Source: Styela clava
Taxonomy: Eukaryota
Length of the DNA: 64,000 nt
Assembly: GCF_964204865.1 (NCBI RefSeq)
Contig: NC_135258.1
Coordinates: forward strand, 21,514,001 to 21,578,000
Reading direction: 5' to 3'
In this document: positions 17,305 through 29,715 of the stretch, piece by piece
Layout of the letters: every line of letters begins with the position of its first letter
Numbering within the stretch: the first letter of the stretch is position 1
Notes under the pieces: generated by a model
The model's input: the letters and a program-made list of their open reading frames with translations, nothing else
Database searches by the model: none
Told to the model about the DNA's origin: nothing
Program-made: the position numbers and the translations under genes

Positions 17305-19814
17305 CTGTGAGTATTCAATATTCAAATGTCGCTCAATTCTTCTTTTAAATACATTTCCACTGAAGGTTAAACCGAAAAGTCTTGAAACACTGAATTGCTG
17401 ATTTTAGATTATCTGATGTTAAAAGCGTATTATATTCATAAACAACAATTTTCTGCAACCAACTATAAATGCAGTATTATTAATAGTATCGTATACTGTA
17501 ATCAAGTCACCTGACCAAAATGATATCCATTTGAGATATGAGTTACCTTTGAAATCGACTAGTCACATAACATAAGTACGAAAGCAAACGCTATCGCTGT
17601 TTGAGCATGGCACGTTGATAAACTGGCCATTTCTGTCTAGATATAATCGTAAATTACGGAAAATAATTATGCAGTGCTAAAAAAAATTCCTCGGTAATAC
17701 CAAACGATACTCGCTGATAAATAAAAACTATACAGTGGTATGATCTACTACAACGTAATTCTCTTAATTTTCATACATACAAACCCCCTAATCAGACGGT
17801 AACATGTCGAAGCCACACCTGCGACAGAAACGACCGCGACATAACAATGCGTACAGATACAAGTCGCTCGCTATCTCCGTCACCTCTCTCTCTCGTGTTT
17901 CGCAACTTTTTTCTCCCAGTGTCGAATTTCGCGTACCTCAACTGCACACCGATAGTACGATATGCTAGGTACGTTCTGCTTATTGTAAGTTTGTAAAGCG
18001 GGACAATTCACAATATTTTTAATTGCTGTATTCATTCAGTAATTTTTCTAATACTTCGAAAAAAATGTCATATTCTAGTAGTGCGTGGATTACATTCTTG
18101 TATCTATGCTATATAACAACGGCAAGTTTAATGCTTACTTTATATTTTGTTTTAACTATTATTTCACCGTATATATTCAGAGTCAAATTTAATAAAAACA
18201 TTAGCCTTGAACTCGCGAAATTAAAGTTTCCAAAAAATTCAAATTTTATCACGCAACACGAAACGGCGAAAAAAGTGTACGTAATATTTTTCTGCTCAAT
18301 ATTGCTCAATTAGCCCCTAATTTAAATAAGAAAAAGTTGCACATGGCGCGAATAGAGCTATATGCAAATCCATTCTAATGACATAGTTATTAATAGGCGG
18401 TGGTCATCTCAGAGAAGTCAACACCGCTATCCCATCAATTCAACGAAACGGATTCTTTTTGAGAAAAAAACATCGAAGCGTAGAAATTGATCGGCAAGCG
18501 AAAATCATCCAATTTTACCATACGCCGGGAGGCAGCGCTAGTTTCTGCTCACACGGCTATGTATATACGAGACTCTAATAGACTCAACACTTTTTCAAGA
18601 AAACTAAGTTAGAAGAATTATTTCGGTTTTGTATATATATACAGTATATCTTCAGAATTAAGCCAAAAAGTTGAACCGCGGCAGTCTTTCTCCCCATTCC
18701 CCAAAATTGTGAAACAAAAAATTTCCACAAAACAAGTTGTTTGCACTAATGCGTATCCATCATATGTACGGCCAGCCTAATAAAAGTTATTTGACCGAAT
18801 GGATCCCAAGTTGATTCAAGCCTAATACTACAACTTGCATGGTGGTCTTTCTCATTTCTTCACATTTAGTTGCAAAACTTTGGTACAATGATCCTGTGCC
18901 GATTTCGGAATTGTGTCGTCGAAACAAGAATTAGCGGATCATTATTTGCGATACAGTGACTTATACAAATAATTCAACAAAAATATCAGCTAATTGAAAT
19001 GTCATGTATCGCTCGCTTTCCGGCCCGCGTAAGTAAAGAAAATAAACTTGATGTAGCCTTTGGCTTATCAGCAACTTTAACCTTAGTTTCATTGTGAATG
19101 CACTGCCCTGCAGTAACAATATCGACATTGCTGATCTGCGTTCATAAACCATGATCCATAGATGATTCTACGTTTAGATCACGCATGAGGGATAAATTTG
19201 ATGCCAACATCATAACATTCATAATCAACTCAAAAAGTCACAACGTACCTGCCTTAGAAAGGTCGTTTTCTTTATCCCAGATCACCCCTTTCATTTATGC
19301 AATTAAATGGTGGAAAATAGAAATATGAGCGCATGTGGCTCAGCCGTGACATGTGAACCGCACATAATTCCGCACGACGAGACAAACAGAAATACAAACA
19401 AAACGAGTCCAGTGGTTCTTATCTTGATGTGCGACATCTCATTAGTAATAAAAATCATCACTTTATAAATTTACAAAACAGAAGATGATAGCTCTATTTC
19501 ATAAATCTTCACAGTAAATACAATGGAAAACCATGACAAACATTTGAAACTAATAGACTTTTAAAAGATTGTATGATAAATGCCAAGTGTGGTCTATTAA
19601 GCATGTTTCATAATGAAGTTGTTTTTTCTTGTCTATGTCACTCGATTGTCTAATAACTTTTCAAAATTTCTAGAACATGGCTGCGATAAAAACGGTACAA
19701 CACTGTTAAAGTCCATTTTACATATTTAATAGTTAATTCATAACTAAACGAATCCTGTTGGTCAAGTCTAGTAGATTACTGAATAATCGGAGGAAAATGA
19801 GAAAAAACTCCACG

Positions 19815-22800
19815 TTACAGGATACAACATCTTGATTCGTTGGTTATAGCCATACTTCCTTGACCCCGTTGCGCCATCAAGTAGCTAAGACAATCAGTTA
19901 CGGCACGAGCAAAAGCAACAGCATCTTGCGCTGAGGTTTTGCTAGAGACAGTGGTGTGCATATCAGCCTTGCTGTGGAAGGGCAGGAATGACTGAAACAC
20001 TAAATCGTGACAGTCACGCTCTCTAAAGAATCCTTCTTTCCTTTGACCGCGCTTGCTACAAACCCCGAAAAAAGTCGCCTCACGGATTGGTGGTTGATAA
20101 TCATCTGAAGTAAATAAAAAAGTACATAGAAGTAATAAATCTACATGGAAGTAATATGCAAATATCTAAACTCAATATTAAGGAAATAGAACAGGTAGTA
20201 ATATATATGTTTTGGGAATTAGATCAGCCTATCGCGCGGTTAAACGGAATAATGTAATATGACGTCACATACACTTCAGATTCACTATTTTTTGAATAAC
20301 GTATTTATACCTCTTTAGCTTATGCCACTATAGTATGGCAGATCGGCATTGTCTACTCACCATAGTTGAGTATAGCGCTTTATTGACCACGGGGCCACTG
20401 TGTTATACATTAGAACTATTGCAACATCAGCAGTACAAACCTTCTTGCTGCATCATTTCCGTTGTTACATATTGATTTGTTAATGGATTTAGCTTTCTCT
20501 TCGTCTGTTTGTTTACTGATTGCAATGCCGATTTCCCACCATCTCTGCTTCTATCGAAAGTTGCCGTGACACAAGACGCATAAGGCGGTGGACCCGATTT
20601 TTGTATTGTTTCGAAATCATCCCAATTAAACGTGCTTTTCCGATACCACATTCCTGGTCCCCGGACATCCACTTCACTGTCAATTACTACAATGACGTCA
20701 TAGCAAGGGCGAACTCTGGAATTAAAGCGCATAATTGAGTTCGTCTTTCCCAAGAATAATTTGAATAGGAATGAATTACATAATTAAGTAAAAAAGAGTA
20801 AGAATTAAGTAAATAACTTAAATAATAACAAAAGATGCTCAAATATATGGATACGCAGGCCAAAACAAATGAGTGTCTATCGCAGTAGAGCAGTGTTCCC
20901 GACTTCGCCTGACCACCAGATCACAAACGCGGAACCGCCACAAGGTGCGCAATATTTAATTTTGATGATGTTGTCGCACAAAAAAAAATTATACCCCTTA
21001 CATCCAACAGAAATAAATGAAAGCAATAACTTTCGAGCAAAAAAATACAATCTTTAACCACTGAAAATTTCAGAGCAATTGATCCTGTAGTTAATGAGAA
21101 AAATGATTTTTTTCATAACAATGAGAATGAAAAAAGGGTACTCCTGAAGTATACGCATCAAGATGTTGCATAACCTGAACCCTGACCTGGTACACAACCT
21201 GAGTGCAGGTTGTGCGCCATTTTGGTGCGCATACTTCAGGAGGTCCGAAAAAAGAATTCTATCAACAACATAATAATAATAAACGATCCATATGTAATGT
21301 TCGTGTCCAAAAAGGGATCAAAAACATATAGTATAAACGAAATTACGTTTCAATAGCAGCGTCACATCGTATCTGAAACATTCCATGTGTTGTGATGAAA
21401 GGATCTCTTGTTTTTAATATCGATCGATCACAAGCAATAACGTCAGTTGGGATTTTGAATTTTTTCCTGAGTTCATGAACAAGAACAGCAAGTAGTTGCT
21501 CGTTTACTCGATTCGCTGTAAGAATAGCTGCACGGCACATTGTCAGGGGTCTGAAAACAAGAAATAAAACAAAAAAGTTATAAATATATTTATTCAAGTT
21601 TTACTAAAACAGAATAATTGAAGTCAGTTTTATGTTGATTACCTGGATTTTTCGAACTCTCAAACTTATCTTATTTTCCATTCTCTGCAAAAGAATCTGA
21701 TTTTCACTTCTGAGGTCTTGCACATCTTTAGCGCATTAAACCAATGGCTAGTCTAAATTTCGAGTTCAAATGCCTTTTGTAAAATCTGACATTACCGAAA
21801 ACTTTCACAAAAATACCATCCACGTAGGTGTAAATTGGTAACAATTCGTGTATATTATTATATTAATATATACTATAACCTTTTTCGTAGCTGCAGGGAT
21901 TCTTGGACAAATTTCCAAACAATGTTTACTGCATATGATGATGATTTTGTCAACAAATCTATCGTGGTTTTTGTTGAATGAACTTCAGCTTCTTCACAAT
22001 AATCACAACTCTTCCCAGGATGAAGTTTCCCCATATTGAAAGCATGTGGTCTCTCCGACTTCACGACAGCACATATGGGGATTAAACAAAATTTCCGTAT
22101 AATCAAAGGAATCCGAGGATTATCTGTGAGCTTCATCAAAATTTTTCTTATATTTTCTGATACATTGCGACCCAATTCTATCTTTCTATATGTTTCAATC
22201 ATCGAAAATGTATAATTTCCGTATTTCGACAACTCTTCTTTCTTGCGACACTTGATCATGCACATTCGTGCAACAGCGGCGCATGCATTTACTGTTCGAA
22301 GTGGATCGTTCTCAGGTGCGGGAGAGCACATAATAATTTTAACATTTTGTCGATTTGAAGGTATATTGTGAACTATTTTTGATCCCTTCGCTTCTGTTAT
22401 CATCCAAGTCTTTACAAAATTCAATATTGCTTTCGGTCCTCCCTCTGAGCATTTTGTCAGAATATTCCAAGTGTATAACAGCCTCACTGACCCTCCAGCT
22501 GTGATAATCCAGGTGTTATTATTTGTTTCAACAACATCCGTTTTGATTAGTTCAGTATGTCGAGGTTCCTCAGTAATTGCTTTTACAATAGAAGATAATA
22601 CTGGATGAGTATTCAAGCGACCAATGCTGACGTCATCTCCATCGGGAAGAAGTAGCAGATCAAACAACCTGTATGCAACATTTGCTTATTAATATGTCTA
22701 TGTTGGGAATGTTCATACTATAAATCGAATTATACCTACAGTATTTTTGAATTTATTATTGACTTGCTTATGTCGAGGCTAAATTAAAACTAGACGATAT

Positions 22801-23317
22801 ATTATTTTTCAATCAAGCGAGACGTGGCCATAGCAACAGAACAAAATTGAACAAAGCAGAAATTGCAAGAGGAATCAATAAACTGACATCCTTATAATAT
22901 AAATATGTCACTTAGGAGAATAAATTTAGACAATTTAATGAAAACGCTACATCAGACCTTGCTATGACCGTGACAAAGTTAGATCGTGAATAATTCTTTT
23001 CGAAATAGAAGTAATAGACTCACTCATTAGAACTTCTGAATGCTCGTTCAAGGCTGCATGTCGGTTTAATTACCAAACCGTTTTGGAGCGTGACAGGGTA
23101 CCAACCTACGAGAGAGAAACAGAGTGACATATTGCAGAAATACCCGTCAATGAAGAGACTGCTATGTGGAATGTAGAAGTAAATTACCCAAGACTTACTT
23201 ACCATCGGCTGATGCAATGATGACTTGAACTCCAAGATTGGAAAGCACTGATGATGTCACGATTACATCAACATCACTACTACCAGACGCTATTGCGATC
23301 AGAGCTTTGGGCTTCAT
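19815..23317 (-). CDS. Uncharacterised ~584-aa protein with two tandem divergent DJ-1/PfpI (class I glutamine amidotransferase-like) domains
   Basis: Six phase-compatible GT-AG exons: 23317-23203, 23105-23024, 22668-21880, 21550-21347, 20715-20441, 20104-19815 (1755 nt). An in-frame TAA lies two codons upstream of the ATG. N-terminus MKPKALIAIASGSSDVDVIVTSSVLSNLGVQVIIASADGWYPVTLQNGLVIKPTCSLERA...FDLLLLPDG aligns by eye with DJ-1 ([34 protein letters not shown]...VVICPDASLEDA...YDVVVLPGG). A second copy reads RAAILTANRVNEQLLAVLVHELRK...FQIRCDAAIETVRPCYDVIVVID...TTVSSKTSAQDAVAFARAVTDCL. Confidence 0.75.
21137..21246. mobile_element. Palindromic 110-bp MITE (GG...CC ends, 8-bp TSD)
   Basis: GGTACTCCTGAAGTAT...ATACTTCAGGAGGTCC; perfect TSD GAAAAAAG (21129-21136, 21247-21254); related copies at 31347 and 37748. 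Confidence 0.85.
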
Positions 23318-25193
23318 TTCTTAGTAATGATGATTTTAAACTCTCGAAAAGATTTAGTACTGTTACTTGTGACGAAATAATGAAACGAATTACAAACTAC
23401 AATATTTTTATCACTACCAGTAGAAGTAGCGCGAGATTTTACGTCGCTATCTGTTTCTAAACATAAATAATTGTTTGGGCACAATTAATCCGAGAATTCA
23501 ATTTCAAACAAATTCATTTAACGCCGTATTTGCACCGCGTGATTGTTTTTTTCTTGCCATTGATGTAAACTGCTTGTCTGGGGAAGTCTGATTTTGGTCA
23601 GACGAACGTCACAGAAATACATTTGTGTTAGTATGCAGCAAGACTCTTCGAATTGCATGGTACAGCATTACTATTTTTTTTTTTATAAATCCATGTTAAA
23701 CAACCATACCAGATACATTTCCACCCACCCCACTATATCTGAAGGTGCTTTAAATGATTTCTATGCAAAAGAATATATTCTGTCAAATTTCCCTTGCATG
23801 TTCCTTTGAAACATGTCTTTTTCCTTGTTGGTTGAGGAAGGAGGAGATTAGGCCTCGATAAAATCGACTAGTGCGTCAGATCGCCAATGGATGCGTCAAA
23901 TGAATCATAGCGTGCGAAGGCTATGTGGATCCTTACGGCGAGCTTCATCAAACCTCATAAAACTTCTATTTTCATTTACGGATGACAATCCCATACAAAG
24001 AAAACAGTTTCTACTGTGGCAAATGTTTTATTGCAGAAAGAAAAACAAAACTTACCGATAAATAAACTCCACAAGTGAATATAAAATAAGTATATACAGT
24101 CAAAACATTTCATTTGTTATCTAGGTTTCACGGCAAGAAGATCTAGAATGGCACATTCATTTAAAAAACAAAACAAAAGAGGCGTTAAGGGTAATGCCAA
24201 CTAGGCAAGAGATTCAACTAGAGGAATGTAAATAAAAATAAGTTATGAGATTAGGTACCTAATAGCAAAAACTCAAATTCAATATTAATTTGGATAGACT
24301 GCATTGTTTATGCCACTTTAACTAAGGTGACCAGTGTGGCGTTCTACTTGGCTGTGGTTCAATTTTTTTCTGCTCAATTCAAATTGCAATTTATCCCAGA
24401 GAAACCAAGAACGATTGGAAAAAAATGAGTTAAAAAAAGAACAGAGTTGTACTAGGTTACTACAGTTCAAACTATGATCACAGTGGAAAATATGATACTC
24501 TATAAAATACTATTGTGAAGTTAAGAAGGAAGAACAATATTATCATAAGGATATTAGTAAGTGGTGACAGAGGAATAGCTTAATTAGAAAAATATTAATC
24601 CCATCGAAGAAACAATATAGCAATGCCTATTGCCTACCATATTGGAGTAGTTTATTGATACTGATGTATTTAATAAGAAGTAACTAAGGCAACTGCCAGA
24701 ATAATTTGTCAAAAAAGGAGTTGATATTTCAAAACAAAATAAGTTCAGTACATTTACAACATATAAATCTTTTGCACCTTTTGACCTGTGTTGATTAGAT
24801 ATAAACAAAAAATGGCAATATGACCAAAAATAAAAGAAATCCATACACTTTGAAGAGAAATGAAAGAAGAACTAATTAGATTAATGCACATTGCACATAT
24901 TTCAGAATATACATAAATAGATTGATTTTTAGGGTTTATAGCAGTATAACAAACGCAACTTGATGCTTCAATATTTAGTGAATTTTCAACCGTTTTCCCA
25001 AATGAAAAAAAATTTGCACTCAACCCCAAAAGAATATTCACAAAAATAAAATAAACAAACAAAAATATATATGAACTGAAAACAGTGGAATAGCAATACA
25101 GAATTAAACACAGTGGTAGATGAACATTCATCTGCAACTTCTCCCAGCCAAAATTGAATTACAAGGTTTTTCTGAAAATTTATAGATCAAATA

Positions 25194-28100
25194 CTAAGTA
25201 CGTTTCATAGAATAACCTCTATTGTACCTGTAAATGGGAGCAAGAGATGAATGTGCGGCAGGAGCCACCGGTGCAACCATGCAGCCATATTGTGCCTGGT
25301 ATTGCTGAAGTGATGCCGAGTCTTCAGTCATCTGTGGAGGAACTGGGGACGCGATTGGAGTGTTCCCAGTGCTGTTTAAAGCCATTTGATGTTGCACAGC
25401 TGAACTTGCTTTCGCACTTTCCTGAGTTGCTTTACGATCTTCATCATGCAATCTAAAATACCATAACGTCAGTCTTTCAAGTGATAAAAACTTCCCAACA
25501 ATACTACTGAGTACTGATTAAAGGAATATGATGGAGTAAACTAAAGTACAGACTGTAGAATCATAATTTGAATTTCATGTATATGAATACAGTAAAATAC
25601 TATCATAAATATGCTTGTGCCTACAGCAAAATTGAGCATTGTTTTCAGTTAATAAAATTCTTGCTTCATATGGTACCTTAATAGTATTTCAATGCATGGA
25701 ACAAGATGCGACCATGTAAAATTGCTCTGTCTCCTCATTTCCGAAGTCCATGTTGGTGATATATGAAGACAAATTCTTGCTGATGCAAGACAAGCAGCAG
25801 TGATTAGTGATGGCTTGAACACGAGAAATGCAGGATCTAAAGGTAAAATAAGATATCTGAGACCACTAACTTTAGTGTTATAGTAAACCTTACTAGCATG
25901 GAGTGACAAAAGGGCTAAAATCTAGTGTCAAATTTTATCCATTCATGTTGAATGTTTATGCAATCAATTAGAAGGGTTTGCCGTGGGTATGAGGAATAAT
26001 CAGGTATTAAATACAAAAATTGAAAATGACATTGCACCCATAAAATTAAAATAAATCTGTAATGAACGTTATGCTGGAAATGGTCAATAAATGTCTTAAT
26101 ATTCCAGTGTCAGAAATATTATTGGTATAGCAAATAAATCCATATATATACGATTGGTGTAGCAAGTTAAGACTAGTTTGTTAAATGTGTTGTGATAGAT
26201 GAAAGCCAAGGAAAGCCATTAGGTTCAGTTAAAAAAATACTGAGAATCTAAAACCTGCAAGCATGCAACATCATCTTAAAAATAGCTGCAACTATGTGGG
26301 ACAGATCTTTGATACAAAACATGTTATTTGTAGTAAGCTTGATGTAAAAGGCCATATCTCCAATCAAAAAAAAAAAGAGATAGCGTGTTGGCCTAGCGCA
26401 GGCCCGCACAACTCAAATCACCACGAGGGCCGCAAGCATAAATCTGAAGGCCCGGTGGGCCGCAAACTTTGCCAAATACATATTTCACGAGATGAACTAC
26501 AAATCAAAATAATATTGTGAAACAGTTAAATTTAATGAAACACTTTCACTACTGGGGAGCTTAAAAGTATGAAGAATCTTATTTTCTTGAGTAAAAACGA
26601 GGTACAGGATTTTTGCATATGAGATGGCAAATATGTATTTAGTGCTTCATCTACCTTGAAAACCCACCCTTCATTTTCAATATTTCTTTTTTATTAGAAT
26701 TAGGTATTGCGTGTTGCAGTATAAACTGACTGCATGAAAATGTTGTGCAGGTGGCCTAGCGGTTAAACAATTGAACAAATACTATGTCTTGGCTGTTCAA
26801 AACCCAGGATAATATAAATTGGATAGGCATACTGAACAGGACATTTGTCAGTCTTTTCAAAAACACTAGCTCCCTCTTATCTGTTCTCTTAAATAATAAG
26901 GAATTCTCTTCACACTAAAATAATCCAATTTTACTAAATAAAGCAGCAAACATATTGCTTTGCAAGCAACTCAACATGGGCCTATTTGCAAGATCAAATC
27001 CAGGTCTATATAACATATGACTGAAGCTGTTAAAATTTTACCTTGTAATGAAACTTCAAGAAAATAGTTGACATTCTTCTCCATGTAAATGTAGGCTTCT
27101 TCACGATTTACTAATGGTCGTCCAACATGTAAATCATGCGATCCCAATGCAACCTTAAAGAAAAAATTTAGAAAAATTAATAACGCAGCTGAATATTTTT
27201 AAATACGGTAACTACAATATCAAATCAAGTACCTGCATATAAAAATCTTTATAATGAGATGCAGTGGAGAATCCTATATTCCAACCAAATGCTGAAAGTA
27301 TTCTTAATTCCATATGCAAATAATCAGAAGCCTGTGATTAATGTAATGTAATTAATGTAATTAATCATTTGAAAAGTTTAATTACATAAAGTTTTGGGTA
27401 GATATGTATTTCAGAGTCTTTCCCAGTATCTCATTTTGATTTTATGATTTCTGAGTTGATCCCTCAATGTACCACTGATATCAGACTCCATATTTGGCAG
27501 CAATACAATAAATTTTATTAACGGTAATAAATTTTTTGACTCATTTTCCATCATACAGTTATTTAACTGAATCTTTGGAGGAAAAAAACACAAGCATTTA
27601 CAAATAAAATTAATCTGGAATATTAATTGAATGATTGAATTGTTAAATGATGAACTCCTTGAATTTCCCTAGCTTGCTCAAACAAGAAATATGAATGAGA
27701 TTCTATGAAATAAATCATTGTTTACAGTTGTCATTGCTGGATGGGAAGGATGGAAAGAGTCAAATTGAACTCTTTCATCAGGGCTCACTTGAATCTGCAC
27801 ATGCCATAGTTTTGATACTGTTTTATATAAAATTGTTAATTGCTGTTGTAGCCGTAATAAATTTACTTCGAGACAGCATGTTAATTCCCCCTTAAAAGGC
27901 TTATTCAGTAATTTGTAATATCATCATCCTCTGGGTTACAACTATAGACCAATGAAATTCATTCACTTTATTGGTAATCAAATTCACAATTGACGTACGT
28001 TAGCTTTAGATGTCCTAGATAAATTACTGAACCAACTTATTAAATCACCACAGTGAACACCACTTTGAAAACCAGTTTAAATTGTTGACTAATTTAATAA

Positions 28101-29715
28101 AAATAATTCTATATGTATATCCTATTATTACTGGTAAATACTGTATTATTATTGCTGTTTTGGATGCCACTTTACATTTATGTATTGGAATATTGAACCG
28201 GGAAACACTGATTCCAAATCAGATACAGTACAATATAGATACAATACCTTCAATTGCCATTGTAAGCCTTCCATCAAAAGTTTAAACTTAGGTATTTTTT
28301 CTTCTCTTTCTTCAAATTTGCCTACAATTAAAAAGAAGTGAAACTAGTTTACAGTTTCCAATTATAAATTCTGATAACTTCATCAACTAACATAATTCAT
28401 ATTCATAAAATCGTTGTGTTCATCATTGTTGGGAAAGATATGGGAGCAACTGACTAGTAAAGGTAATAGGTGTGTGCTTGTTTTTGGAACAGCAGTTACA
28501 GGAACACAAGCAAACTAGTAATAGCAAAAAGTAAATCAGTAGTACATAAAAAAAATTTATAAACTAATTTATTGCAGTCAGATAAAGAATTTGAAAAAAC
28601 CTTGATTTTCCCGTATTTGAAACAAGTTACAAGAAGGTGATGGCACATAAAAAGTAAAAGGTATCAACTGCTGCCAATTCATTAATGTATGTATGTATCT
28701 ATAACTTCCTAATATGTAAGCCTAAAACGGGTGGTTGCTAGCTGCAAACATGAGCATGACAGAATACTATGTTTTCATAATTAAGAGTGGTAGTGATATG
28801 ATATCTTGCATTCATTTGTGGTTACTATAAAAATCTACAACCCGCGTTGAAACTCGAGAGTAATACGTCAAAACTGAAAATATACTTAAAAAGAACATCA
28901 AATAGAAAAAAAAGTAAAAAAGGCATTCCAGGGTGAAGGGAGATATGAAACAACCAATGGTGGCTAAGAAGTAGTGGCACCCAGTGATTAAATCTAACAT
29001 TGATACAGGAGGATCACTGTAGTTATTGAAAAATCCAACTCACTAGCAATTAAGAGACAGCAAACAACAAGAACTTTTAAATCATCAACAGAAACTGTGT
29101 AGAGGTCAGTAAAGCGATCGTACAAGGTCACTGCCAGATGCTGCGCATTTCCATTCAGTCGAAACTTCTGACAAGTGAGAGCCAACCAATCAACCAAATA
29201 TCTTCTCAGATACATCAGTGGAGAATTACCCTGAAGTCCACATATCAAATTTTCCTAAAAGCAAAAAATATTTTTAGTTGAGAAAGTAGTCAACAAAGTC
29301 TGAAAGTGCATAATGATATCTGATATAAGCAATATTACTGTATTATGAGCAGGATCAATTTGCAAACAATAGGTTTGTGACTATATGAGAATTGAGATGG
29401 CTAATTGCCTGAAGGTTAAAATCGAACGTCCAAGTACAGTAGCACGTACAGCCTTAGGAATCTGAAGACAGACAATTGCACTACATTGTCTAGTTCAATA
29501 GTTTTTGCCTACACATCCTATACCATACATTATTTTTAATTCAGGCTACATTCAGACATTGCAATATTAGGCTAAGAGTAAACCTATTATTGCATATCAA
29601 CGATTCTCGTACTGGTATCCGTACCGTATAAAAATAATATCACCTTCAATTTCAAAGTGTCATGAATGTCTTTAGCAAGATCGCCATTCCACCATTCGCC
29701 CTTACGCCATTCCAT
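25194..29715 (-). CDS. CCNJ: Cyclin J
   Basis: Seven exons: 29715-29644, 29254-29044, 28321-28248, 27331-27233, 27153-27042, 25836-25677, 25452-25194. Characteristic sequence MEWRKGEWWNGDLAKDIHDTLKLKE...GNSPLMYLRRY...HLAVTLYDRF...CLLIASKFEE...[38 protein letters not shown]. Confidence 0.93.
26399..26468. mobile_element. Fragment resembling a hAT/Charlie-type terminus
   Basis: CAGGCCCGCACAACTC...GGGCCGCA...GGGCCGCA, a GC-rich island in an AT-rich intron; no partner end found. Confidence 0.35.
26747..26895 (+). mobile_element. Degenerate tRNA-derived SINE in a cyclin J intron
   Basis: A-box-like GTGGCCTAGCGG (26751) and B-box-like GTTCAAAACC (26795). Confidence 0.4.

Follow-up and report, generated by a model that had tools for sequence, protein, structure and literature searches.

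The locus on the minus strand of the analyzed Styela clava window (the whole stretch of DNA, 64,000 nt long, to which all coordinates refer) raises the question of whether an animal gene can encode two DJ-1/PfpI-like domains in one chain and whether such domains have kept their catalytic residues. A reading made from the letters of the DNA (the sequence-only reading) had proposed a hidden six-exon gene for a tandem protein that appears catalytically dead in both halves and may act as a covalent pseudo-dimer.

Gene model and transcript support of LOC120339501

Joining of six minus-strand exons yielded a coding sequence of 1755 nt, corresponding to 584 codons and a stop (Table 1). All introns have GT..AG ends, with an AG acceptor and a GTGAGT donor flanking exon 2, and the phases match. 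The model is identical to the RefSeq protein XP_039263574.2 (P0001; 584 aa), listed as "uncharacterized protein LOC120339501 [Styela clava]," on which all whole-protein analyses were run. The gene had thus not been hidden, since it was already annotated in RefSeq and a PF01965 match had been precomputed for its protein.

Table 1 Features of LOC120339501 in the 64,000-nt window
Feature	Position	Strand	Description
Exon 1	23203..23317	-	ATG at 23317; residues 1-38 and one base; donor GT 23202-23201; first strand and Asp17 region of the DJ-1-like domain
Exon 2	23024..23105	-	82 nt; residues 39-66, split codon at both ends
Exon 3, whole	21880..22668	-	GT..AG boundaries
Exon 3, first part	22230..22668	-	Remainder of domain 1, residues 66-212
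Putative elbow segment WIITAGGSV	22485-22511	-	Residues 119-127; in the first part of exon 3
Exon 3, second part	21880..22229	-	Conserved linker, residues 213-328
Exon 4	21347..21550	-	Second half begins; residues 329-396
Exon 5	20441..20715	-	Middle of the second half; motifs TAxFDxxxDGGxxAL and LNPLTNQ
Exon 6, coding part including stop	19815..20104	-	Styela-specific insertion with FFGVCS, then terminal strand and helix, CCIL end
3' untranslated region	19412..19814	-	About 400 nt; from transcript-like contigs

Contigs of transcript-like runs (three runs from three studies) skipped introns 2, 3, 4, and 5 exactly. These introns had zero depth in the three transcript-like runs and a depth of approximately 15x in a DNA run. 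The exon 2/3 junction (22668/23024) was present in the X1 and X4 contigs, the junctions 21550/21880 and 20715/21347 were present in transcript-like contigs, and the exon 5 junctions, including that with exon 6 (20104/20441), were present in three runs. At the 3' end, the contigs reached position 19412 in run X4, 19493 in run X2, and 19584 in run X1. LOC120339501 is a genuine expressed S. clava gene. The six-exon structure with compatible splice sites put forward in the sequence-only reading was borne out by the intron ends, the phases, the contigs at introns 2 to 5, and the identity with RefSeq; of the five junctions, four were confirmed in RNA-like contigs, whereas the exon 1/2 junction was found in none of them.

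Family size and variation

A full HMMER search matched five species, and the family comprises five clusters among 1.84 billion representatives. The orthologs P0002 to P0005 were obtained from Logan; P0006 is the older, 588-aa RefSeq version. Comparison of P0001 with P0002 revealed 37 to 62% identity, depending on the region, along the whole length (approximately 500 residues). Exon 4 is the best-conserved region between these two orthologs (62% identity), and both exon 5 motifs are common to them.

Within S. clava, 10 of the 12 coding variants were nonsynonymous, so the constraint within the species looks weak. An in-frame 12-nt indel polymorphism is located in the linker near positions 22002 to 22006 and was seen in RNA contigs and in P0006. 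A decaying pseudogene was rejected as an explanation: several haplotypes carry an uninterrupted open reading frame, the indel keeps the frame, splicing of the mRNA was observed, and the ortholog is conserved at the identity given above. The literature search returned nothing on the LOC120339501 protein or on ascidian DJ-1 paralogs.

The N-terminal domain is related to DJ-1/PfpI

Residues 4 to 100 matched the Pfam family DJ-1_PfpI (PF01965) with 39.3 bits (E 7.6e-10; profile positions 2 to 93 of 165), exceeding the curated gathering cut-off of 26.6 bits, in a match that covers just the N-terminal 56% of the profile. The alignment is continuous over the exon 1/2 and 2/3 junctions up to residue 100. 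Exon 1 alone scored 17.7 bits (E 0.0032), and in exon-by-exon scans of Pfam and NCBIfam it was the only exon to give a (weak) DJ-1 match. P0006 reached 40.7 bits against PF01965, and the NCBIfam family TIGR01383 matched P0001 with an E value of 1.7e-4. Human DJ-1 chains in the PDB matched residues 4 to 100 onto DJ-1 residues 5 to 90 (E approximately 1e-5). A PDB search with the family profile was uninformative: the N-terminal columns, filled by two rows only, were dropped when the profile was built.

Members of the DJ-1/PfpI superfamily have a class I glutamine-amidotransferase-like (flavodoxin-like) alpha/beta fold, and structure prediction was performed with and without an alignment. The alignment-free ESMFold2 predicted residues 1 to 215 at a pLDDT of 65 to 71, returning neither coordinates nor a fold comparison. 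AlphaFold2 with a 6-row family alignment gave unusable models of P0001 (mean pLDDT 37.2) and P0002 (mean pLDDT 36.8). A Foldseek search with the first of these models placed DJ-1 chains on top, probably via sequence, with a best E value of 0.16, so the structural comparison envisaged in the sequence-only reading did not bear on the fold. From its sequence, the N-terminal domain (approximately residues 1 to 212) is predicted to keep the DJ-1 core.

The linker and the second half

Domain 1 is followed by a linker of approximately 115 residues that is present in all five species from the full HMMER search. It is predicted to be helical, carries the motif P-[IVA]-C-[AS] at residue 265, and gave no Pfam or PDB match. 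This conserved linker and the conserved CaaX-type C terminus described below had both been missed in the sequence-only reading.

The region beyond the linker (residues 329 to 584; approximately 255 residues) is a putative alpha/beta region. The earlier reading had assigned the DJ-1 motif order to both halves. For the first half this stands, with a Pfam score well over the cut-off; for the second half, none of the tests gave a result better than chance. Exons 4 to 6 gave no Pfam or NCBIfam match even at an E value of up to 10. Comparison of half 1 with half 2 gave E values above 0.9 in BLASTP and of 0.58 in hhalign, no better than linker controls. PDB searches revealed no DJ-1 match for the second half, the ESM Atlas returned no usable match for the second half of P0002, a protein homology search with exon 4 yielded no candidate, and BLASTP of exon 4 against the canonical DJ-1 exon of the same genome produced no alignment. 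ESMFold2 predicted the second half at a pLDDT of 33 to 40. Alignment of domain 1, the linker, and domain 2 to a 45-sequence GATD1 profile by hhalign was powerless and was discarded: domain 1, the positive control, failed at an E value of 0.16, and the linker scored better. The second half is thus not recognized as a DJ-1 domain by any tool, and the hints of such a domain come from P0002 and the ESM Atlas. The P0002 protein as a whole matched Pfam DJ-1_PfpI with an E value of 0.0024. Its sub-threshold stretch at residues 285 to 356 (profile positions 2 to 66; own E value between 1 and 10) is the counterpart of exon 4. The ESM Atlas feature search with residues 329 to 584 retrieved DJ-1/PfpI clusters at 0.85 to 0.86, which is a lead only. 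The C-terminal region is possibly another DJ-1-like domain that has degenerated much further than the first.

One tentative explanation goes further and holds that residues 329 to 584 form a true degenerate DJ-1 domain packed on domain 1 in the manner of the DJ-1 dimer. It is consistent with the P0002 stretch, which lies in the right register, with the Atlas lead, and with the DJ-1 order seen by eye in the second half (RAAIL, IRCDAAIE, YDVIVVI, TATFD...DGG, LNPLTNQ, and a terminal DAVAFARAV helix). The packing was addressed in a complex test of residues 1 to 215 against residues 329 to 584, which gave a score of 0.50 (best of three controls, 0.01), graded as weak support. This mark was attained by 51 of the 78 solved complexes and 2 of the 108 mismatched pairs, and scores of 0.60 or less comprised only 5 of the 78 solved complexes and all 4 mismatches that passed; the runs had at least 0% contact agreement and a partner pLDDT of at least 33. 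The proposed covalent pseudo-dimer is opposed by the nonsignificant comparisons between the halves, the missing Pfam, NCBIfam, and PDB matches, the failure of the Atlas with P0002 and of exon 4 with the genome's own DJ-1 exon, and the low pLDDT of the second half. The FFGVCS motif, which had been proposed to hold a possible elbow Cys, lies in an insertion that is mostly absent from P0002.

It is also possible, at a similarly low probability, that a single DJ-1-like N-terminal domain is joined to an unrelated lineage-specific C-terminal module consisting of the helical linker and another alpha/beta fold. The DJ-1 likeness of the second half would then reflect only the alternating strands and helices common to Rossmann-like or flavodoxin-like folds. 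All statistical tests of the second half are negative, as this explanation would have it, and conservation in the family peaks in the linker and exon 4, neither of which matches a known family. However, the first residue of the sub-threshold stretch of P0002 coincides exactly with the start of the second half and falls on profile position 2, and the motif order seen by eye spans the entire half, not only its start.

The 5' end of the transcript

Exon 1 was normally covered in the DNA run; its depth was zero in each of the three RNA-like runs, including one with a depth of approximately 160. The RNA-like contigs extend only to position 23106, at the 5' edge of exon 2; seven extra letters on one of them were not placed. 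Because no RNA-like contig covers exon 1, the 5' end is unconfirmed. The open reading frame of the ortholog P0002 (on a 2999-nt contig) starts with MAQVCANVYRP, approximately 11 residues ahead of the FDLLLLP strand. Taken together, these two results imply that the N-terminal strands of the domain might be missing from the main product. The annotated 5' end would then be wrong or rarely used, and the main mRNA would start from exon 2, for example by way of a spliced leader or from another first exon. Spliced-leader trans-splicing is common in tunicates. Such an arrangement is nevertheless unlikely here. An in-frame ATG is lacking in exon 2, and no Met follows in frame until residue 155; intron 1 is short (97 nt) and has GT..AG ends; and the contig data show presence, not absence. 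In addition, the Pfam alignment runs unbroken through exons 1 to 3, and the rise from 17.7 to 39.3 bits on joining would be improbable for an exon foreign to the gene. All the same, much of the DJ-1 signal comes from exon 1, and the absence of this exon from the RNA-like contigs counts against the overall reading of the locus.

Active-site residues of domain 1

In HMMER's own alignment, Asp17 of the query is aligned to DJ-1 position 18 (Glu18), in agreement with the by-eye placement of this Asp in the sequence-only reading. In active DJ-1-type enzymes, Glu18 forms a hydrogen bond with the nucleophile Cys. The best-scoring PDB chain in the DJ-1 search itself carries Asp at this position. At the nucleophile elbow, no Cys was found under any register in the four species that cover the segment (P0001, P0002, P0004, and P0005). 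Whichever plausible register is taken, the elbow position in TWIITAGGSVRLL and in the matching segments of P0002, P0004, and P0005 is occupied by Gly, Ala, Ile, or Ser; Gly124 of the segment is invariant. The absence of the nucleophile, noted earlier for the S. clava protein, therefore holds in all four species. Since the elbow segment is located outside the HMMER-aligned region (the profile match stops at position 93), this result is based on the family alignment and on registers set by eye.

Domain 1 would have Gly or Ala in the place of Cys106 and Asp for Glu18, and an equivalent of His126 is not apparent. With the DJ-1 catalytic residues gone, the domain is presumably unable to perform Cys-dependent glyoxalase, deglycase, or hydrolase reactions. 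It would most likely be a binding or scaffold module, and a non-catalytic role of the LOC120339501 protein is likely. That the protein is still an enzyme with another nucleophile, such as Cys180 or the linker residue Cys265, is very improbable. In favor of this reading, all five species share Cys180 and Cys195, four of the five have Cys265 (P-I-C-A), and hhalign put PICAVV on the GATD1 elbow KPICAIG (E 0.038). This pairing lacks significance, given that the positive control failed as well, and no known DJ-1-superfamily member is documented here to use those positions. The invariant Cys180 and Cys195, both encoded by the first part of exon 3, could support other chemistry, which counts against a non-catalytic reading.

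A conserved CaaX-type C terminus

Both full-length orthologs have a CaaX-type box at the C terminus of the protein (CCIL in P0001 and P0006; CNIQ in P0002). The CCIL codons are located at positions 19818 to 19829, directly followed by the stop codon (19815 to 19817). Cys is found at position -4 in P0001, P0006, and P0002 in a tail that is otherwise approximately 21% identical, and an aliphatic residue is found at -2 in both orthologs. This box is a new observation beyond the sequence-only reading. CaaX-prenylated cytosolic proteins have the same Cys at -4 and aliphatic residue at -2 at the extreme C terminus, a likeness at the level of the motif. Because the box is conserved, the protein probably carries a prenyl group that tethers it to a membrane on the cytosolic side, an anchoring suggested by the motif. 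No DJ-1-superfamily member is known to have been reported as prenylated.

Comparison with known DJ-1-superfamily proteins

An intact canonical DJ-1 is encoded elsewhere in the S. clava genome by a multi-exon locus on another chromosome-scale contig (C9; PF01965 at positions 27 to 164), which encodes the intact Cys and His motifs as LIGAICAAP and ITSHP. LOC120339501 is not the PARK7 ortholog. Over residues 4 to 100, the order of strands and helices is the same as in DJ-1/PARK7, and the N terminus of the LOC120339501 protein starts at strand 1 with no signal peptide. In contrast to DJ-1/PARK7, the protein is three times longer, lacks the elbow Cys, has Asp for Glu18, contains an insertion of approximately 15 residues ahead of the elbow strand, and adds the linker, the 255-residue C-terminal region, and the CaaX-type end.

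The plant two-domain DJ-1/glyoxalase III proteins, e.g., those of Arabidopsis, would share with LOC120339501 a possible tandem of two DJ-1-like halves per chain. In the plant proteins, both domains are recognized by PF01965 and are separated by short linkers (PMC8170915), whereas in LOC120339501 only the first half is recognized and the linker is far longer. Animal DJ-1 proteins are mostly single-domain, and in the few that are "double," the two DJ-1_PfpI domains are very short (52 to 90 aa) and overlapping or conjoint (PMC8170915). GATD1/PDDC1 (P0009), also encoded in the S. clava genome, is likewise an animal DJ-1-superfamily paralog of unknown function. It differs in being a 213-aa single-domain protein that is wide across Metazoa and keeps the elbow Cys (KPICAIG). 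Profile comparison of the LOC120339501 family with GATD1 was not significant.

Proposed nature of the protein and its meaning

The preferred reading, in which our confidence is evenly balanced, is that LOC120339501 encodes an expressed, single-copy, lineage-restricted DJ-1/PfpI variant that has lost its catalytic chemistry, has a C-terminal region that may be a degenerate DJ-1-like domain, and is probably prenylated. From the N terminus, the protein would consist of the DJ-1-like domain, the predicted helical linker, the alpha/beta region, and the CaaX-type box. A bolder and improbable version of this reading has two DJ-1 domains, both catalytically dead, linked by a new, conserved helical module into a covalent pseudo-dimer that is anchored to a membrane by prenylation; the protein would be confined to some ascidians and act as a non-enzymatic sensor or scaffold. 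If true, animals would have their first true tandem DJ-1 architecture, and the DJ-1 superfamily its first lipid-anchored member.

The practical reach is limited by the small number of tunicate sequences, their fast evolution, and the putative nature of the second DJ-1 domain, which would be the most striking feature of the family. DJ-1 is a Parkinson's disease protein whose actual biochemical role is still debated, and natural paralogs that have the fold but not the Cys nucleophile reveal the capabilities of the scaffold in the absence of catalysis. With a lipid anchor and conserved additional modules, a chordate paralog of this kind would be a useful natural experiment.

LOC120339501 is an annotated gene whose 5' end is unconfirmed

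LOC120339501 is a real gene, annotated yet uncharacterized. All of its introns have GT..AG ends with compatible phases (1, 2, 2, 2, 1), and the exons add up to 1755 nt, corresponding to 584 codons plus stop. The six-exon, 584-aa open reading frame with canonical splicing proposed by the sequence-only reading was thereby confirmed. A full HMMER search with the exon 3 translation, covering 1.84 billion representatives, retrieved a 584-aa protein (P0001) with 100% identity over residues 67 to 328. P0001 has the sequence of the proposed model and corresponds to the RefSeq entry XP_039263574.2 ("uncharacterized protein LOC120339501 [Styela clava]"), for which a PF01965 assignment had already been precomputed; the gene, described earlier as hidden, is therefore an annotated one. 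Exon pieces were used individually as queries, and whole-protein analyses were performed with P0001.

Features of LOC120339501 and the surrounding sequence (window positions)
Feature	Position	Strand	Remark
Exon 1	23317-23203	-	Boundary placed on sequence
Exon 2	23105-23024	-	Boundary placed on sequence
Exon 3	22668-21880	-	Boundary placed on sequence
Exon 4	21550-21347	-	Boundary placed on sequence
Exon 5	20715-20441	-	Boundary placed on sequence
Exon 6, including stop	20104-19815	-	Boundary placed on sequence
Intron 2	22669-23023	-	Skipped exactly by RNA-like contigs
Intron 3	21551-21879	-	Skipped exactly by RNA-like contigs
Intron 4	20716-21346	-	Skipped exactly by RNA-like contigs
Intron 5	20105-20440	-	Skipped exactly by RNA-like contigs
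3' UTR, far end	~19412	-	From contigs
CaaX-type box, CCIL	19818-19829	-	
In-frame indel	22002-22006		Exon 3, linker
Intron 4 element	20961-21262		Short
Inverted arms of the element	21141-21180 / 21203-21242		40 nt, 83% complementary
Upstream repeat	23528-23678		~210-360 nt upstream of start codon
Cyclin gene	25197-29248	-	
Cyclin_N exon ORF	28997-29248	-	E 3.2e-12
Cyclin_C exon ORF	25652-25909	-	E 2e-11

Three runs from three studies behaved like transcriptomes: their contigs covered exons and left introns 2 to 5 at depth zero, and a DNA run covered the whole gene, introns included, at ~15x. Because the RNA-like contigs skip introns 2 to 5 exactly, four of the five predicted junctions are confirmed. 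Exon 1 was at depth zero in each of the three RNA-like runs, including one with a depth of ~160, although contigs demonstrate presence, not absence. The RNA-like contigs end at 23106, one of them with 7 extra unplaced letters, and the 5' end is unconfirmed. Exon 1 is favored because the Pfam alignment runs unbroken through exons 1 to 3, with the score rising from 17.7 bits (exon 1 alone) to 39.3 bits (whole protein), and because exon 2 lacks an in-frame ATG, residue 155 being the next Met in frame. It is disfavored by the full-length ortholog P0002 (2999-nt contig), which begins only ~11 residues ahead of the FDLLLLP strand.

The summed contig depth of the intron 4 element reached thousands to more than a hundred thousand in every run; it is therefore probably a very high-copy MITE-like repeat. 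In every run, the second very high-copy repeat, upstream of the start codon, had a depth between the hundreds and the tens of thousands. The same-strand upstream neighbor is the cyclin gene.

The first half is a DJ-1/PfpI domain without the catalytic residues

Residues 4 to 100 of P0001 matched Pfam DJ-1_PfpI with 39.3 bits (cut-off, 26.6 bits; E 7.6e-10; profile positions 2 to 93 of 165), which places the N-terminal domain in the DJ-1/PfpI superfamily. TIGR01383 (DJ-1 family glyoxalase III) matched with E 1.7e-4, and human DJ-1 chains in the PDB matched with E ~1e-5, residues 4 to 96 aligning with DJ-1 5 to 90. ESMFold2, run within the complex test, gave residues 1 to 215 a pLDDT of 65 to 71 without an alignment.

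In the PDB search alignment, Asp17 falls on DJ-1 position 18, in agreement with the Asp assigned earlier by eye; the best-scoring PDB chain also has Asp there. The Pfam match ends just ahead of the nucleophile elbow, past a ~15-residue insertion. In the family alignment, the strand after the insertion reads TWIITAGGSVRLL in Styela, three further species have CVIAIGGAASAL, CIVFAGICVRL, and CIIASGNSLKIL, and Gly124 within this strand is invariant. As had been claimed for domain 1, none of the species in this alignment has a Cys at the nucleophile position, whichever register within two positions is taken. The His126 position is Gly143, by eye. Both the Cys and the Glu of an active DJ-1-type enzyme are thus missing from the N-terminal domain. 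Because of the missing elbow Cys, Asp17 at position 18, and Gly143 at His126, the DJ-1 catalytic apparatus is judged absent from this domain, on a family alignment rather than a statistically scored DJ-1 alignment.

The second half may be a degenerate DJ-1-like domain

Both halves had been proposed to follow the DJ-1 motif order, which holds for the first half; for the second half (residues 329 to 584), no significant match was found. Exons 4, 5, and 6 gave zero Pfam or NCBIfam matches, even at E <= 10, and residues 329 to 584 had no match in the PDB search. Comparison of the two halves gave E > 0.9 by BLASTP and E 0.58 by hhalign, not better than linker controls; the top local hhalign alignment is the pairing of both terminal strand-helix segments suggested before. 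The hhalign comparison with the GATD1 profile did not pass its positive control and was set aside. AlphaFold2, run twice with the 6-row family alignment, reached mean pLDDT values of ~37, and a Foldseek pass on the first model revealed no significant match.

Two weak signals point toward DJ-1. Against Pfam DJ-1_PfpI, P0002 gave a whole-protein E of 0.0024; its best stretch (285 to 356 on profile positions 2 to 66) is in the right register for DJ-1 but individually passes only at E <= 10. An Atlas feature search with the second half returned DJ-1/PfpI clusters at 0.85 to 0.86, a range graded by the tool as a lead only, and the P0002 second half returned nothing. P0001 and P0002 share the motifs TAxFDxxxDGGxxAL and LNPLTNQ and a terminal DAVxFA helix. 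No conserved Cys is found at the putative elbow across the two orthologs; FFGVCS, once considered a possible elbow, sits in a Styela-specific segment mostly missing from P0002. We judge it slightly more likely than not that residues 329 to 584 form a degenerate DJ-1-like domain.

A complex test of residues 1 to 215 against 329 to 584 returned "weak support," with a score of 0.50 (best of three controls, 0.01), contact agreement between runs of at least 0%, and partner pLDDT of at least 33. Among solved complexes, 51 of 78 attain the mark of this test, as do 2 of 108 mismatched pairs; only 5 of those 78 complexes score <=0.60, as do all 4 mismatches that passed. The tandem DJ-1 pseudo-dimer is possible but unproven.

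Conserved linker, cysteines, and C terminus

Linker conservation, the C-terminal box, and the invariant Cys residues were not mentioned in the sequence-only reading. The ~115-residue linker (213 to 328) was found in all five species, is predicted to be helical in low-confidence models, and matches no known family; its conserved motifs are KYGNY, RIPLxIR, P-I-C-A, GKLHPG, and SSSYxVNIVWKFVQxSLQLRKR. All five species have Cys180 and Cys195, and four of the five also have Cys265. A CaaX-type box closes the sequence of each full-length ortholog (CCIL in Styela, CNIQ in P0002), with Cys at -4 and Ile at -2 conserved and the remaining tail ~21% identical. At the motif level, this box suggests prenylation and membrane tethering.

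LOC120339501 is a fast-evolving third paralog

Exon 3 was matched by only five clusters among the 1.84 billion representatives, and P0002 was the only full-length match; all non-Styela sequences derive from Logan run assemblies. P0001 and P0002 are 38 to 40% identical overall (domain 1, 37%; linker, 33%; second half, 46%; exon 4, 62%). In contigs of four S. clava runs, 10 of 12 coding variants in exons 3 to 6 were nonsynonymous; this small sample hints at relaxed or diversifying within-species selection. A 12-nt in-frame linker indel separates haplotypes, the additional letters being present in all three RNA-like runs and not in the DNA run. Because of this indel, the older RefSeq version has 588 aa, with GKSLEKLPNYCEE versus GKSCDYCEE at the site. 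LOC120339501 is fast-evolving, with the frame kept.

The S. clava assembly also contains a canonical DJ-1 gene of several exons that retains intact LIGAICAAP and ITSHP (contig C9, 17242695-17243636; loci L002 to L004) and a single-exon, RefSeq-named GATD1/PDDC1 ortholog of 213 aa (contig C13, 15689375-15689650; locus L005). Since LOC120339501 is present as a single copy and these two lie elsewhere in the genome, it is a third, divergent paralog. Among known proteins, it is nearest to DJ-1/PARK7 and the DJ-1/PfpI superfamily. The well-known tandem forms are the glyoxalase III proteins of plants. In a family survey, animal DJ-1 proteins were mostly single-domain, and the few "double" cases had two very short DJ-1_PfpI domains (52 to 90 aa), overlapping or conjoint (PMC8170915). 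Our literature search found no paper on the LOC120339501 protein or ascidian DJ-1 paralogs. LOC120339501 is a lineage-restricted DJ-1-superfamily variant: its recognizable domain lacks the catalytic residues, its C-terminal extension is large and conserved, and its C terminus probably carries a prenylation signal.
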